A stretch of DNA of 64,000 nt from NCBI GenBank assembly GCA_002269645.1, contig NIVC01002382.1:17614-81613 (forward strand), in the 5' to 3' direction. The translations under genes and the position numbers were made by a program. This DNA is from Macrostomum lignano (taxonomy: Eukaryota). Below, in pieces: positions 3,471-16,847 of the stretch. The notes beneath the pieces were generated by a model, which searched no databases, was not told the origin of the DNA, and worked only from the letters and a program-made list of their open reading frames with translations. Every line of letters begins with the position of its first letter. Position 1 is the stretch's first letter.

Positions 3471-3627
3471 GACTGACATTGGAATCAGATTGGTGGCATT
3501 GGCATTAGCAATGGCTGCATTGACATTCATTGGCAATTGCTTCTTTAAAAAAGCTGGGTGCCAGAATGATGGAGCCTTGCCGCATGACAGACCCGTATCG
3601 CTCAATTTCAGGTAAGAGGCCAGCGCA

Positions 3628-6600
3628 ATGCTGCCAATTCACTCGAAAGACACCGGCGTTAAAGCCAGCTGGGGCATCTGCGACAAGATCGCCGGCTGGA
3701 TTAGGCTAATCCTGTCCGACCGCGACTCGCGCAATCTGTTTTTCTTCCTGCTATTGAACTTGTCCTTCGCCTTTGTGGAATTGTTCTACGGAGTTTGGAC
3801 TAACAGCCTGGGCCTCATATCCGACTCATTTCACATGTTCTTCGATTGCACAGCGCTGCTAACTGGCCTGGCCGCCTCTCTAGTGTCCAAATGGCGTGCC
3901 AATCCTAACTACTCATACGGGTGAGTAGTATTAATGACATTTTTGTAGCTTTTTCACAGGTAAGCATGGATTAATCGGCTTAAAATTGAACTTATTAATT
4001 TTTCAGCTACGTTCGAGCCGAAATCATGGGCGGCTTTGTTAACGGCTTGTTCCTGCTGTTTGTGGCCTTCTTCATCTTCTCTGAGGCTGTGGAGGTGAGA
4101 GAAGCGGAATTTGTTAATATAAGCAGAAACTTAAAAACTGACAGAAAAGGCTGTCGCTGTCAGGAGCTTCAGAAACCGAAAAGAGAACCAGAAACTGAAA
4201 GGTGAAGCAGAAACTGAAGGGTAAAGCAGAAACTGAAAGGAGAAGCAGAAACTGAAAGGAGAAGCAGAAACTGAAAGGAGAAGCAGAAACTGAAAGGAGA
4301 AGCAGAAACTGAAATGAGAACCAGAAACTGAAAGGTGAAGCAGAAACTGAAATAAGAAGCAGAAACTGAAATAAGAAGCAGAAACTGAAATGAGAACCAG
4401 AAACTGAAAGGAGAAGCAGAAACTGAAAGGAGAAGCAGAAACTGAAAGGAGAAGCAGAAACTGAAAGGAGGAGCAGAAACTGAAAGGAGGAGCAGAAACT
4501 GAAATAAGAAGCAGAAACTGAAAGGAGAAGCAGAAACTGAAAGGAGAAGCAGAAACTGAAAGGAGAAGCAGAAACTGAAAGGAGAAGCAGAAACTGAAAT
4601 AAGAAGCAGAAACTGAAAGGAGGAGCAGAAACTGAAAGGAGGAGCAGAAACTGAAATAAGAAGCAGAAACTGAAAGGAGAAGCAGAAACTGAAAGGAGAA
4701 GCAGAAACTGAAATAAGAAGCAGAAACTGAAAGGAGGAGCAGAAACTGAAAGGAGAAGCAGAAACTGAAAGGAGATGCAGAAACTGAAAGGAGAAGCAGA
4801 AACTGAAAGGAGAAGCAGAAACTGAAAGGAGGAGCAGAAACTGAAAGGAGAAGCAGAAACTGAAATAAGAAGCAGAAACTGAAAGGAGGAGCAGAAACTG
4901 AAAGGAGAAGCAGAAACTGAAAGGAGAAGCAGAAACTGAAAGGAGAAGCAGAAACTGAAAGGAGGAGCAGAAACTGAAAGGAGAAGCAGAAACTGAAAGG
5001 AGGAGCAGAAACTGAAAGGAGGAGCAGAAACTGAAAGGAGAAGCAGAAACTGAAAGGAGAAGCAGAAACTGAAAGGAGAAGCAGAAACTGAAATAAGAAG
5101 CAGAAACTGAAAGGAGTAGCAGAAACTGAAAGGAGAAGCAGAAACTGAAAGGAGAAGCAGAAACTGAAATAAGAAGCAGAAACTGAAAGGAGAAGCAGAA
5201 ACTGAAAGGAGAAGCAGAAACTGAAAGGAGGAGCAGAAACTGAAAGGAGGAGCAGAAACTGAAAGGAGAAGCAGAAACTGAAATGAGGAGCAGAAAAAAG
5301 ACGTATAAAAACTTTAAAAAGTTACTTTAAAAAACAATGATCAGAAGCAGATAATATCTTCAATTTTTCTTGACCTTCTCCAACCCTCGCCGCCCTCGCA
5401 GCGCCTGGCGGAGCCGCCAGAGGTGAAGCACGACCGCCTCTTCATAGTGTCCGTGCTGGGCTTCCTAGTCAATATTATTGGCATATTTGTATTCCAACAC
5501 GGCGGCTCTCACCACGGCCACTCGCACGACGGCGGCGGTCACGGTCACAGTCACGGCGGCGGAGGTCACGGTCACTCGCACGATCACGGTCACAGCCACG
5601 GCGGCGGTCACGGTCACTCGCACCACCATCCAGCTAATGATTATTCCTCTACAAAAGCTGGCGAAGACCTGCCCGCTTCGGGTTCGGATGGCGTTGGTCA
5701 CCAGGGCGGAGGCGGCGGCAACAAAATCATGCAGGTGAGATTAGAGGCAACATTCTTGCCGATATGTATCGTAAATTAACACGGGTAAAGTAACACAGAT
5801 GCGCTTTAGAGTTAATAGTACAGAGTGCCCTTTAACTCATCTAACACATACTCGCAGGGCGTATTTCTGCACATCATGGCCGACACGCTGGGCAGCATAG
5901 GCGTCATCATCTCCTCTCTGCTTATTCAATACTTTGGTTGGATGGCCGCTGATCCAATCTGCTCAATGTTTATCGCTGTACTCATATTTGTATCAGTGCT
6001 ATCGCTAGTGTCCGACAGTCTAAGCATATTAATGATGCGCACTCCTAAGCAGCTTGAGCACGAACTGCCGGCTTGTTTCAATCGGGTGGCGAGTCTCGAA
6101 GGCGTCTATTCTATTCAGGAGCCGCACTTCTGGACTCTGTGCTCCGATGTCTATATTGGCAATATTAAACTGGAGGTGGCCCCGTCTGCCGATATTCGCT
6201 ACATACAGAGCCAGACGCATAACATGTTTTACCAGGTGAGTAGTTGTTCGAGCTCGCTTTATCTGGCGAGTGTCATGTAGATCTTAATTTTAATTACATG
6301 TAGCTCTGATGAAGAGATTTTGACAATAAAATCTCTGGATGAGGTCTCGAGCATGAGAAAGGCAGATCTTGAGCATGAGATCCAAGAGAAAGGGATATCT
6401 TGAGCATGAGATCTCAGAGGAGGATCTTAAGCATAAGATCTCAAAGAAGGGGAGATCTTGAGCATGATATCTCAAAGGAGAAGAGATCGTAAGCATGATA
6501 TCCCAGAGAAGGGGACATCTTGAGCATCAGATCCCAGAGGAGAGGGCATCTTGATCATGAGATCCCAGAGAAGGGGACATCTTGAGCATCAGATCCCAGA

Positions 6601-14160: not shown

Positions 14161-14511
14161 GCTGCAGACGTCCTCAAACGCTTCTGATTAGCTTCTTGTA
14201 GCCAATACTGAGTCTTATCTGAGAATTGTATTTAAAATTGAGCTTAGTTTAAGTGCTATTGTTGTTAATATGTTTTGTTTCATAAATACAGGTAAATATA
14301 AGAATACTTTTTTTGCAGTTGTTTTGCATTTTTCGTTTAATTTTTTTTTACCTCATGCGTCGGTACTAGTAGCTAGTTATGAGTATTTAGATTAACCTGA
14401 GCACCAATTCAGCTAGCAGATTAGCAGCCTTTGATTTTCGTCTAAATTAAATTACAAGTTGGACAATGCTGAGCCCGATACTTAATTAGTGGCAATATAC
14501 ACTTCAGCGCC

Positions 14512-16847
14512 ATGAGCTACAAGGAGCGCGAGCACTTGAACCGGCTGATTATCAGCCAGCTATACTATGATGGCCACCAGTCCATAGCCGTGAAGCTCAA
14601 CAGCCTGGTGAATGACAAATCCGTGCCCTGCGGCCCGTCCAGCCGCCTGCTGAACCTGGTCCGCACCGGCCTGTCCCTGGAGGAGGAGGAGAAAGAGAAA
14701 GCCATGCACGATGCCAATGCTGTTGAACCGGGCACCGGTATCGATTTGGAAATCGAGTCCGAGACCGTAGCCAAGTCGCCTGAGGCTGCTCTGTACGAAA
14801 CCTGTTACGTCACTTCGCACAAAGCGCCGTGCCGTTCGGCCGCCTTCAGCCCGAGCGGCCAGCTGGTCTGCACGGGATCCACCGATGCCAGCATTAAAAT
14901 CTTGGACATTGAACGGATGCTGCTGAAAGGCATGGGCGGAGACGACGGCTCCAGCGAGTCGCACCCGGTGATTCGCACTCTGTACGATCACACGGAGGAG
15001 GTCACCTGTCTGGAGTTCCACCCGGATCCGCGGCTCACCCTGCTGGCCTCCGCGTCCAAGGACTACTATGTGAAACTGTTCGACTATTCCAATCCGTCTG
15101 TGAAGAAAGCGCAGAGAAGTCTGAGAGAGGCTTCACCGGTTAGTTTGCCCGCCCGTTGCTGGGGGGTTGTTGCTTTTTGCAAGCAAGCTGCAAGATCCTT
15201 ATTGTCAAATAGCCTCTAACTGTTTGTTTGCAATAAGTTCGAACTTGTAAAGTTTCGAGCTTGCGATAATCCGAGCTTGTGATAATCCGAGCTTGTGATA
15301 ATCCAACCTTGTGATAATCCAACCTTGTGATAATCCAACCTTGTGATAATCCAACCTTGTGATAATCCAACCTTGTGATAATCCAACCTTGTGATAATCC
15401 AACCTTGTGATAATCCAACTTGTGATAATCCAACTTGTGATAATCCAACCTTGTGATAATCCAACCTTGTGATAATCCAACCTTGTGATAATCCAACCTG
15501 CGATAATCCGAGCTTGTAAAATAGTATCAAGGTCAAGCTCTAATTAGCAGTTTTAAGGTCCCCTTAATCAATGACAAAGTTTTGTTAATATGAAACAAAA
15601 GATCCGTTAGAAATCCTGAGAAAGGCGTGAAAACAACTTTTCGAACTCGACTTCTGAGATGCTTCTGAAAGCGCTTCGTCCCGTGCGGCTTCCATTGGCA
15701 GGTTCGAACCTTCTGCTTTCACCCAAGCGGCAACTACATGATTGTCGGCTGCGACCAGCCAACCCTGCGCGTTTACGACGTGTCCACTGGCCAGTGCTTT
15801 GTGAGCTGCAATCCCAACGATCAGCACACTCGGGCGCTCACCATGCTGCGCTGGGCCGGCTCCGGCCAGTACTACTGCTCAGCGTCCAAGGACGGCTGTC
15901 TGAAACTCTGGGACGGCGTCTCCGGCCGTTGCGTGGCCAATTTTGAACGGGCCCACGATGGATACGAAGTCTGCTCCGCTGTGTTCTCCAGGAATGGTGG
16001 GAGATGGCTCACTTTTGTGTGTTAAACTCCCAGCTTCCCAGATCCTCAGTTGCTGGGCCAGCCTTCCAGATCCCTAGTTGCTGGGCCAGCCTTCCAGATC
16101 CCTAGTTGCTGGGCCAGCCTTCCAGATCCCTAGTTGCTGGGCCAGCCTTCCAGATCCCTAGTTGCTGGGCCAGCCTTCCAGATCCCTAGTTGCTGGGCCA
16201 GCCTTCCAGATCCCTAGTTGCTGGGCCAGCCTTCCAGATCCTCAGTTGCTGGGCCAGCCCCCCAGATCCTCAGTTGCTGGGCCAGCCTCCCAGATCCTCA
16301 CTTGCTGGGCCAGCCTCTCAGATCCTCAGTTGCTGGGCCAGCCTCTCAGATCCTCAGTTGCTGGGCCAGCCTCCCAGATCCTCAATTGCTGAGCCAGCCT
16401 CCCAAATCCTCAATTGCTGAGCCAGCCTCCCAGATCCTCAGTTGCTGGGCTACGAGGAGCCAAAGCAGAGTATTAAAACTCAGTTTATCCTGCTCCCACG
16501 CAGGCAAGTACATCCTCAGCTCCGGCAAGGACTCACAGGTGAAGCTGTGGGAGCTGAGCACTGGCCGGCCCCTCATCACCTACACGGGAGCCGGGGCCAG
16601 TGGCCGGCAGAGCCATCGAACCAACGCTGTGTTCAACCACACTGAGGACTTCGTGATGTTCCCGGACGAGGCCACCAAGTCGCTCTGCTGCTGGGATTCT
16701 CGGAGCGCCGATCGCCAGAGACTGCTGGCCCTGTCGCACAACGGAGTGGTCCGGTTTATGACTCACTCCACCACCATGCCCGCCTTTATCAGCTGCTCGG
16801 ACGATCATAGGGCTCGATTCTGGTACAAGAAGGCCCTGACCGAGTGA
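14512..16847 (+). CDS. CSTF1: Cleavage stimulation factor 50 kDa subunit; exons 14512-15138, 15702-15996, 16504-16847
   Basis: [10 protein letters not shown] dimerisation motif, [24 protein letters not shown]40 repeats ending RARFWY; in-frame GT-AG joins. Confidence 0.95.
15255..15515. repeat. 16-bp minisatellite (CCAACCTTGTGATAAT)n in CSTF1 intron 1
   Basis: Tandem units. Confidence 0.9.
16030..16450. repeat. 28-bp minisatellite (CCCAGATCCTCAGTTGCTGGGCCAGCCT)n in CSTF1 intron 2
   Basis: About 15 units. Confidence 0.9.

Follow-up and report, generated by a model that had tools for sequence, protein, structure and literature searches.

A probable spliced-leader-resolved operon of four housekeeping genes with repeat-inflated spacers in Macrostomum lignano

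The flatworm Macrostomum lignano uses a single 35-nt spliced leader (SL) that ends in ATG; trans-splicing affects 30% of its genes, and 15% belong to operons (PMC8629364). These operons were described genome-wide by Ustyantsev and Berezikov in 2021 (PMC8629364), on the Mlig_3_7 annotation of Wudarski et al. 2017 (PMC5730564). They were defined by a repeat-adjusted distance below 1 kb, with a mode near 100 bp, and the top motif at the SL acceptors is [T/C]TNCAG (PMC8629364). We analyzed a 64-kb stretch (the window) of contig NIVC01002382.1 from the same assembly, in which four genes run head to tail on the plus strand: a ZnT7-like gene (SLC30A7), POP5, ATXN10 and CSTF1. With the published operons this run shares the species, the assembly, the leader, the acceptor and the same-strand order of conserved housekeeping genes, and four-gene operons are among those reported. 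It also shares spacers that are inflated by tandem repeats or transposons and fall below 1 kb once repeats are subtracted. There is no difference in kind, but the ZnT7-POP5 interval fits the 1 kb rule only if it is measured from the transcript 3' end, as those authors did, and not from the stop codon.

In SL2-type operons of Caenorhabditis elegans, unrelated housekeeping genes are likewise resolved from a precursor by 3' end formation and an SL, with a short gap between poly(A) signal and acceptor, as seen here ahead of CSTF1. Unlike C. elegans, M. lignano uses one SL at all positions and has no SL2-like leader (PMC8629364), its leader ends in AUG, and in this run the stop-to-acceptor gaps reach kilobases because of the arrays. 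Operons of parasitic flatworms are also same-strand pairs resolved by the SL (Protasio 2012; Tsai 2013; PMC12582326), but they were defined by spacers of at most 300 bp. In Schistosoma the AUG of the leader is an established initiator codon (Cheng et al. 2006, J Biol Chem 281:733, as cited in PMC9851317). POP5 resembles the Schistosoma mansoni case in that it has no start codon of its own and the leader AUG falls in frame; it differs in resting on sequence logic and in coming from a free-living macrostomid.

Gene order and splice acceptors

The features of the locus are as follows.

2700..3611, plus strand: upstream region common to paralogous copies, presumed promoter/outron of the first gene, ending with the candidate acceptor TTTCAG
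3628..6985, plus strand: ZnT7-like (SLC30A7) zinc transporter gene (Pfam Cation_efflux, 4e-50)
6986..9640, plus strand: probable long ZnT7 3' UTR, carrying a 21-nt-unit array followed by poly(A) signals
9798..10285, no strand assigned: MITE-like insertion of 488 bp with perfect 16-bp terminal inverted repeats (CAGTGGCGTAGCCAGG)
10369..10374, plus strand: predicted POP5 trans-splice acceptor CTCCAG, with its AG at 10373-10374, fitting [T/C]TNCAG
10375..10789, plus strand: POP5 frame, encoding an RNase P/MRP subunit in one exon of 137 codons and a stop (Rpp14/Pop5, 2e-23)
10790..11300, plus strand: POP5-ATXN10 spacer of 511 nt, ending in acceptor CTTCAG (11295-11300)
11315..12796, plus strand: ATXN10 (ataxin-10) gene, with 493 codons in one coding exon (Atx10homo_assoc, 1e-18)
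12797..14507, plus strand: ATXN10 3' region and spacer, ending in acceptor CTTCAG (14502-14507)
14512..16847, plus strand: CSTF1 (CstF-50) gene (CSTF1_dimer, 5e-22, and WD40), stop at 16845-16847
16945..16980, plus strand: poly(A) signals after CSTF1, ATTAAA at 16945 and AATAAA at 16975
17509..18009, minus strand: convergent cytochrome b5 gene, which bounds the same-strand run on the downstream side

An earlier note had read these four functionally unrelated genes as an SL trans-spliced operon, and every feature and coordinate it gave was found in the sequence, including the AATAAA past the last gene. The four identities it assigned agree with the Pfam matches to Cation_efflux, Rpp14/Pop5, Atx10homo_assoc, and CSTF1_dimer with WD40. 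All four called genes lie on the plus strand with none intervening, the adjacency used to define operons in PMC8629364, and no called gene on the opposite strand interrupts the run; this holds for the three copies that contain the whole locus, the fourth stopping before CSTF1. The flanks are 97-100% identical among these near-identical copies. The cytochrome b5 gene is called on copy L002, and the corresponding stretch of the window is 97% identical with an open two-exon frame. The 3.2 kb upstream of the ZnT7-like gene contain no called gene, and the promoter of the first gene would lie within 2700..3611.

The ZnT7-like gene has five coding exons (3628-3920, 4007-4094, 5402-5734, 5858-6235 and 6938-6985), with tandem arrays in intron 2 (4170-5296) and intron 4 (6366-6726), and its 379-aa product is identical to the deposited PAA58366.1 (BOX15_Mlig025216g1). 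CSTF1 has three (14512-15138, 15702-15996 and 16504-16847), and both of its introns carry arrays (15260-15517 and 16030-16450).

Each acceptor proposed earlier is present: TTTCAG at 3606-3611, 16 nt ahead of the ZnT7 ATG at 3628; CCAG ending at 10374, with the POP5 frame opening at 10375 without an ATG; TTCAG ending at 11300, 14 nt ahead of the ATXN10 ATG at 11315; and TTCAG ending at 14507, 4 nt ahead of the CSTF1 ATG at 14512. All four fit [T/C]TNCAG, with the coding sequences beginning 0-16 nt downstream. The plus strand of the window has 143 matches to the motif. A given start codon would have one ending 0-16 nt ahead of it by chance with a probability of about 0.04, and all four would with a probability of about 2e-6; this range of distances was set post hoc. 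POP5, ATXN10 and CSTF1 start at their acceptors with no cis donor upstream. The ZnT7 candidate has GTAAGAG directly 3' and a weak pyrimidine tract, which makes its role ambiguous, a point against the four-gene reading.

The deposited gene models point the same way for the three downstream genes. Across the four copies, 10 of their 11 CDS models are non-ATG, 5'-partial ORFs beginning 0-5 nt past the AG (at 11303 for ATXN10 and 14509 for CSTF1), even though the frame remains open 16-38 nt further upstream. The depositors' TBONE pipeline cuts transcriptional units at SL-read peaks (PMC5730564), and such cutting would yield ORFs of this form. The mRNA exons of ATXN10 and CSTF1 would thus begin at SL junctions at 11301 and 14508, respectively.

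POP5 and the leader AUG

In all four copies the POP5 frame contains no Met codon and is preceded by an in-frame stop, 21 nt ahead of the acceptor. Joining the SL, which ends in GCATG, to the acceptor places its AUG directly before GTG CGC and gives the N-terminus MVRKKYRYL (MVRKKYRYLTCELV), compared with MVRFKHRYL (MVRFKHRYLLCELV) in human POP5. With the SL AUG added, the protein aligns residue 1 to residue 1 with human POP5 (6AHR_E, E 1.6e-12), and the MVR N-terminus is restored. Judging by the reading frame, POP5 appears to take its initiator AUG from the leader's 3' end.

Spacers, repeats and the extent of the unit

Our preferred reading, to which we assign a probability of about 0.65, is that the four-gene run is an SL-resolved polycistronic unit. 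It is supported indirectly by the need of POP5 for a donated AUG, by the gene models that start at acceptors and by locus tags that place genes in common transcriptional units. The tags, which are the evidence for a common precursor RNA, are suggestive, as prefixes are shared among clustered transcripts and a consecutive series from g6 to g9 is read from names and accession order. We infer a single promoter, the SL junctions, the poly(A) sites and the inclusion of ZnT7 in the same precursor, and the ZnT7 link is the weakest in the unit.

The earlier note gave repeat-stripped spacers of 1.3, 0.35 and 0.4 kb. Removing the arrays at 7415-8964 and 12830-14158 and the MITE at 9798-10285 reproduces the outer two: the ZnT7-POP5 stop-to-acceptor spacer falls from 3389 nt to about 1351 nt (minus 1550 for the array and 488 for the MITE), and ATXN10-CSTF1 from 1711 nt to 382 nt (minus 1329). 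The middle spacer is 511 nt, and 0.35 kb is reached only by also removing a SINE-like stretch at about 10965-11130, whose repeat status could not be confirmed. Both downstream spacers are thus below the 1000 bp of PMC8629364 (repeat-adjusted, stop to acceptor). In copy L002 they are 512 nt and 364 nt, and the raw ATXN10-CSTF1 spacer varies between copies (1711 vs 674 nt).

The ZnT7 3' array (7415-8964) consists of 74 copies of a 21-nt unit, and the only canonical poly(A) signals of the ZnT7-POP5 spacer lie 3' of it (AATAAA at 9265, 9306, 9566 and 9616; ATTAAA at 9353), which suggests a ZnT7 poly(A) site downstream of the array. In copy L005 (unit Mlig008640), the first-placed gene in the deposited annotation is a 279-aa ORF that crosses this array, followed by POP5, ATXN10 (g3) and CSTF1 (g4), which suggests that the array is transcribed. 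The MITE-like insertion is flanked by an 8-bp duplication (ccctctgt / cccgctgt), contains a 21-nt array of its own (9870-10181) and is itself placed within a 49-nt repeat unit; copies L005 and L006 lack it and have in its place an array of the 49-nt unit about 1.25 kb long. The ATXN10 3' array (12830-14158) has about 70 copies of a 19-nt unit; in copy L002 it spans only some 310 nt.

The arrays are more likely to be parts of 3' UTRs than of intercistronic spacers proper. From poly(A) site to acceptor the distances would then be short: about 250 nt without the MITE for ZnT7-POP5, if the ZnT7 3' UTR ends past the AATAAA at 9616, at most 0.5 kb for POP5-ATXN10 and about 40 nt for ATXN10-CSTF1. 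Canonical signals close ahead of the POP5 acceptor (the last AATAAA, at 9616) and the CSTF1 acceptor (ATTAAA at 14446, 56 nt ahead) count for an operon; the lack of a canonical AATAAA or ATTAAA in the POP5-ATXN10 spacer (10790..11300) counts against it.

A less likely reading is that the operon comprises only POP5, ATXN10 and CSTF1, with the ZnT7-like gene monocistronic and POP5 transcribed from its own promoter in the 3.4-kb spacer and trans-spliced to remove its outron. The AT-rich, non-repeat stretch of 0.8 kb at 8965-9780 could house such a promoter, and the spacer exceeds the published 1 kb threshold even when repeat-stripped; it complies only if the ZnT7 3' UTR reaches the AATAAA cluster at 9265-9621. 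That cluster, however, holds all the canonical signals and leaves only the 250 nt or so of non-MITE sequence before the POP5 acceptor. The locus tags speak on both sides. On the window contig the ZnT7 tag (Mlig025216g1) has a prefix unlike that of the downstream genes, and on NIVC01001985.1 ZnT7 (Mlig026554g1) and ATXN10 (Mlig024472g2) also differ. On NIVC01002599.1, however, ZnT7 (Mlig024472g6, PAA56620) and CSTF1 (Mlig024472g9, PAA56623) share a prefix, and two consecutive accessions separate them. On NIVC01001103.1, ATXN10 (Mlig008640g3) and CSTF1 (g4) are preceded by two called genes, POP5 and, first in the run, the ORF through the ZnT7 array. According to the depositors, transcriptional units are prone to break up where operon spacers are rich in repeats (PMC8629364).

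It seems unlikely that there is no operon at all. In that case each of the four genes would have a promoter of its own, POP5, ATXN10 and CSTF1 would be trans-spliced monocistrons, and the common unit names would stem from read-through or from transcripts wrongly joined over repeats in assembly. Of the M. lignano genes that are trans-spliced, about 60% lie outside operons (PMC8629364), two of the spacers are long before repeats are removed (1.7 and 3.4 kb), and transcript assemblers could fuse neighbouring same-strand genes. Synteny in related flatworms, a check named in the earlier note, did not favour the unit: ATXN10 and CSTF1 are not adjacent in the three cestodes sampled, and the same check found no upstream neighbour in Schistosoma (within 10 kb) or Clonorchis (within 4.8 kb). 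The cestode result indicates that the unit is not an ancestral flatworm operon. On the other hand, the published distribution of distances is bimodal, the array-free spacers of POP5-ATXN10 and ATXN10-CSTF1 fall within its operon peak, and the signal ahead of the CSTF1 acceptor leaves scant room for a promoter.

That the acceptors are ordinary cis sites joined to unrecognised upstream 5' UTR exons, with no SL, is highly improbable: cis and trans acceptors look alike (CAG), many SL acceptors of parasitic flatworms also serve cis splicing (PMC12582326), and a CSTF1 RNA contig of another Macrostomum species (SRR30276804) has a 45-nt leader without the M. lignano SL, but the deposited models end at the acceptors without continuing into upstream exons, the pipeline behind them cuts at SL-read peaks, and a cis exon joined to POP5 would have to end exactly in ATG, as the SL does.

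In the four-gene operon, RNA polymerase II would start upstream of the ZnT7-like gene and read across POP5, ATXN10 and CSTF1. The upstream messages would each be cleaved and polyadenylated, and each downstream message would gain the 35-nt SL at a [T/C]TNCAG acceptor 0-14 nt ahead of its CDS. The leader's 3'-terminal AUG would serve as the POP5 start codon; in ATXN10 and CSTF1 it would be out of frame, and the upstream ORF that it opens would be short (19-21 codons) and overlapping. The kilobase-sized arrays, like the MITE, would be neutral passengers of variable length, mostly within the ZnT7 and ATXN10 3' UTRs.

Array length differs up to about four-fold between homeologous copies (0.3 vs 1.3 kb past ATXN10; 0.7-0.8 vs 1.55 kb past ZnT7), and in two copies a 1.25-kb array whose unit contains CCCCAG directly abuts the POP5 acceptor. 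A speculative and improbable idea is that the arrays are not inert and that their length sets polymerase reach to the downstream cistrons and trans-splicing efficiency, so that in this neopolyploid the dosage of POP5, ATXN10 and CSTF1 would differ from copy to copy.

The four-gene unit is known in kind, as repeat-inflated operons were described genome-wide in 2021, and it is probably already annotated. The arrangement would thus be ordinary for M. lignano and of the published kind.

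Genes of the run and their surroundings

Exact protein matching assigns the window to contig NIVC01002382.1 of M. lignano assembly Mlig_3_7 (GCA_002269645.1). The four genes were rebuilt from sequence, and Pfam confirmed every identity that the earlier note had proposed. The positions that it gave for the acceptor-like sites proved exact for all four genes, and the AATAAA reported after the last gene is present at 16975.

Genes and acceptor-like sites of the run, with the downstream neighbor (window positions)
ending 3611, plus strand: ZnT7 candidate acceptor TTTCAG, 16 nt before the ATG
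3628-3920, 4007-4094, 5402-5734, 5858-6235, 6938-6985, plus strand: coding exons of the ZnT7-like gene, introns all GT..AG
ending 10374, plus strand: POP5 acceptor-like site CTCCAG, 0 nt before the frame
10375-10789, plus strand: POP5, single open frame
ending 11300, plus strand: ATXN10 acceptor-like site CTTCAG, 14 nt before the ATG
11315-12796, plus strand: ATXN10, single exon
ending 14507, plus strand: CSTF1 acceptor-like site CTTCAG, 4 nt before the ATG
14512-15138, 15702-15996, 16504-16847, plus strand: CSTF1 exons
17509-18009, minus strand: cytochrome b5 gene, two exons, intact in the window

The convergent cytochrome b5 gene ends the run downstream. It is annotated on NIVC01002599.1, which carries a near-identical copy of the locus (L002), but has no call on the window's own contig, which looks like an annotation gap. 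Over 3 kb of AT-rich DNA, free of gene calls, lies upstream of the run. There, collinear similarity of the copies begins only at about window position 2700, and a stretch of about 600 bp (window ~1560-2200, L002 ~1200-1800) has, by eye, opposite orientation in the two copies, being either an inverted transposon or a small inversion.

ATXN10 is deposited as a 497-aa 5'-partial form, and the 493-aa form gave no exact-protein match. No deposited record was found by DNA reference for the 137-aa POP5 form. In homology searches, the sole match of POP5 was the window's own protein, and the C-terminal 122 aa of ATXN10 had no matches.

Remaining content of the window (20638-64000)
~20.6-22.1 kb, minus strand: EF-hand gene
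23.7-26.3 kb, minus strand: MFS-like transporter fragments
34.6-35.3 kb, minus strand: FERM-domain exon
44.9-46.4 kb, plus strand: ORF with a weak, sub-threshold WW-domain match
51.9-52.3 kb, plus strand: PLAC8 gene
56.5-58.4 kb, plus strand: 647-aa ORF, no Pfam match; by eye it has several long hydrophobic stretches
59.3-62.9 kb: filled by ORFs without assignment
61.5-61.9 kb: reverse-transcriptase (retroelement) match

Candidate acceptor sites and the predicted POP5 start codon

In M. lignano, [T/C]TNCAG is the leading motif at SL acceptors (PMC8629364), and all four acceptor-like sites fit it. The window's plus strand contains 143 instances of this motif; the chance of four placements at 0-16 nt from start codons is about 2e-6, for a range that was set after data inspection.

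The frame of POP5 contains no Met codon at all, and an in-frame stop lies 21 nt 5' of the acceptor. Joining the M. lignano SL, CGGTCTCTTACTGCGAAGACTCAATTTATTGCATG (PMC8629364), at 10375 gives ATG GTG CGC AAG and a protein starting MVRKKYRYLTCELV. Human POP5 (PDB 6AHR) starts MVRFKHRYLLCELV, and the alignment with SL-started POP5 runs from residue 1 of each. With its start codon supplied by trans-splicing, POP5 would be locked into SL addition. That a flatworm SL AUG serves as initiator has been established in Schistosoma (Cheng et al., 2006, as cited in PMC9851317); compared with that work, the predicted POP5 start codon adds one more example of a known phenomenon and is not itself a new phenomenon.

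For ATXN10 and CSTF1 the SL AUG falls outside the reading frame and opens overlapping upstream ORFs of 19 and 21 codons, respectively; at the ZnT7 candidate acceptor it would likewise open an upstream ORF, of 17 codons. Such overlapping upstream ORFs, opened by an out-of-frame SL AUG, are usual among flatworms.

Four copies of the locus, alike in gene order, are present in the assembly: on the window contig, NIVC01002599.1 (L002), NIVC01001103.1 (L005) and NIVC01001985.1 (L006), the last of which breaks off at the contig end before reaching CSTF1. Among the deposited coding sequences of POP5, ATXN10 and CSTF1, 10 out of 11 are non-ATG, 5'-partial ORFs that start 0-5 nt after the AG. Farther upstream their frame continues open for 16-38 nt more, indicating that the mRNA models begin at the acceptors. 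As the depositors describe it, their TBONE pipeline cuts transcriptional units at SL-trimmed read peaks and T-fill poly(A) sites and then applies TransDecoder (PMC5730564), and the pattern of deposited starts is what this procedure would produce. These three independent, indirect lines agree, and SL trans-splicing of POP5, ATXN10 and CSTF1 is predicted with high confidence.

Deposited starts differ by 3-14 nt among the copies despite identical sequence (10378 in the window versus 9073 in L002, 10001 in L005 and 10001 in L006). For POP5 the start is at +3 on the window's contig and at +0 in the other copies; for ATXN10 it is at +2, +2 and +5, and in L006 at the ATG, where the model is complete and not 5'-partial. 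A likely source of these differences is multiple mapping of SL reads among the near-identical copies.

The ZnT7 candidate acceptor (3606-3620) reads TTTCAG/GTAAGAG, has a weak pyrimidine tract and is identical in all four copies. The GTAAGAG that follows it is donor-like, its first five bases being the same as those of the SL RNA gene donor, ATG/GTAAG (PMC8629364). An SL joined here would give ...GCATG/GTAAGAG, recreating the context that the donor has in the SL RNA gene; taken alone, CAG/GTAAGAG also comes close to a perfect 5' splice site. The window was searched for an SL RNA gene and for the SL itself, and neither is present, as would be expected if the leader comes in trans.

The sole RNA-derived contig found, L004 (Logan SRR30276804_61464), represents CSTF1 mRNA of a Macrostomum species other than M. 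lignano, with a protein at least 90% identical (same 90%-identity protein cluster); identity in DNA is, by eye, about 80%. The 45-nt leader of L004 may be precursor sequence and holds the possible acceptors CCCCAG and CACTAG. As it contains neither the M. lignano SL nor an ATG, it has no bearing on M. lignano junctions.

Probable co-transcription, spacers and repeats

The depositors' gene names combine a transcriptional unit with a g-number. On NIVC01002599.1, ZnT7 is BOX15_Mlig024472g6 (PAA56620.1) and CSTF1 is Mlig024472g9 (PAA56623.1), and the two accessions in between correspond to POP5 and ATXN10. On NIVC01001103.1, ATXN10 is Mlig008640g3 and CSTF1 is Mlig008640g4, preceded by two called genes, i.e., a 279-aa ORF through the 21-nt array of the ZnT7 3'-region and then POP5. 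On the window's own contig, ZnT7 has a separate prefix (Mlig025216g1). RNA-seq units are prone to break in repeat-rich operon spacers (PMC8629364). Co-transcription of at least POP5, ATXN10 and CSTF1, counting the four-gene and three-gene readings jointly, is likely, and we assign the full four-gene unit including ZnT7 a probability of roughly 0.65.

The deposited 279-aa protein (L005 6187-7026, corresponding to array 7415-8964 of the window) has no Pfam match; it is simply the 21-nt (7-codon) array read through in an open frame, and is probably a spurious product of the ZnT7 3'UTR.

The stop-to-acceptor spacers measure 3389, 511 and 1711 nt, and about 1351, 511 and 382 nt after removal of the arrays (7415-8964, 12830-14158) and a 488-bp MITE (9798-10285). 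The earlier estimates of 1.3 and 0.4 kb for the outer spacers agree with these values; the 0.35 kb for the middle one depends on subtracting an unconfirmed SINE, for which ARAGORN and Rfam gave no matches and which has no second copy in the window. The MITE is real: its 16-bp terminal inverted repeats are perfect, an 8-bp duplication flanks it, and two paralogous copies lack it.

In the ZnT7-POP5 spacer, canonical poly(A) signals occur only 3' of the array (9265-9621), and the sole one between ATXN10 and CSTF1 is ATTAAA at 14446, 56 nt before the acceptor; the POP5-ATXN10 spacer has none. Because the canonical signals follow the arrays, the arrays are best read as lying inside long 3'UTRs. The poly(A)-to-acceptor gaps would then be about 250 nt (MITE removed) and 40 nt, near the published mode of about 100 bp for M. 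lignano operons. The operon criterion of a repeat-adjusted intergenic distance below 1 kb (Ustyantsev and Berezikov, 2021) would accommodate ZnT7-POP5 only with distance measured from the transcript end.

The sequence is that of a repeat-rich animal genome, and Tandem Repeats Finder detected many arrays at 1-22 kb of the window, with units of 12-66 nt. Array length changes rapidly among copies: the 21-nt array spans 1550 nt in the window, 676 in L002 and ~760 in L005, and the ATXN10-CSTF1 spacer 1711, 674 and 1710 nt, respectively. In L005 (7740-9000) and L006, a 49-nt unit is expanded to an array of about 1.25 kb abutting the POP5 acceptor. In the window (9759-10336) and L002 there are two such units, cagttctacccgattgtttatccctctgtccctcactctctcccc, split by the MITE; every unit contains CCCCAG. 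Tandem arrays also occupy introns of ZnT7 and CSTF1 (4170-5296, 6366-6726, 15260-15517 and 16030-16450; units of 19, 31, 16 and 28 nt), and the 28-nt array in CSTF1 intron 2 measures 421 nt in the window versus 1625 nt in L002.

Relation to known flatworm operons

Outside the arrays the four copies are 97-100% identical and therefore uninformative on spacer constraint. Synteny in parasitic flatworms was compared at CSTF1 only. In the three cestodes sampled (Mesocestoides corti, Hydatigera taeniaeformis and Schistocephalus solidus), CSTF1 is preceded by an unrelated gene that lies on the other strand, and no annotated gene lies upstream within 10 kb in Schistosoma or within 4.8 kb in Clonorchis. 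On this sampling the unit is not an ancient flatworm operon, at least regarding Neodermata.

Operons of M. lignano hold 10,458 genes, mostly two or three each with a maximum of nine; conserved genes are enriched, and spacers are inflated by repeats, with a repeat-adjusted mode of about 100 bp (PMC8629364). The locus has the same arrangement as these genome-wide operons (Ustyantsev and Berezikov, 2021), and the compact unit swollen by repeats that had been proposed agrees with this published picture. Whereas C. elegans has an SL2-type leader specialized for downstream genes, M. lignano has none, and in contrast to parasitic-flatworm operons the raw spacers here reach kilobases.

The operon interpretation has support from evidence that is indirect but converges. 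This kind of system is already known and the locus is very probably in public annotation already. The four genes are absent from the 2018 supplement. The finding mainly confirms existing knowledge, a flatworm operon having been recognized correctly from raw sequence. Neither the POP5 example nor the change in array length raises a new question; the local value is that of a worked example, in which POP5 would depend on trans-splicing for its start codon and the four copies illustrate how fast array length changes within a transcribed unit.
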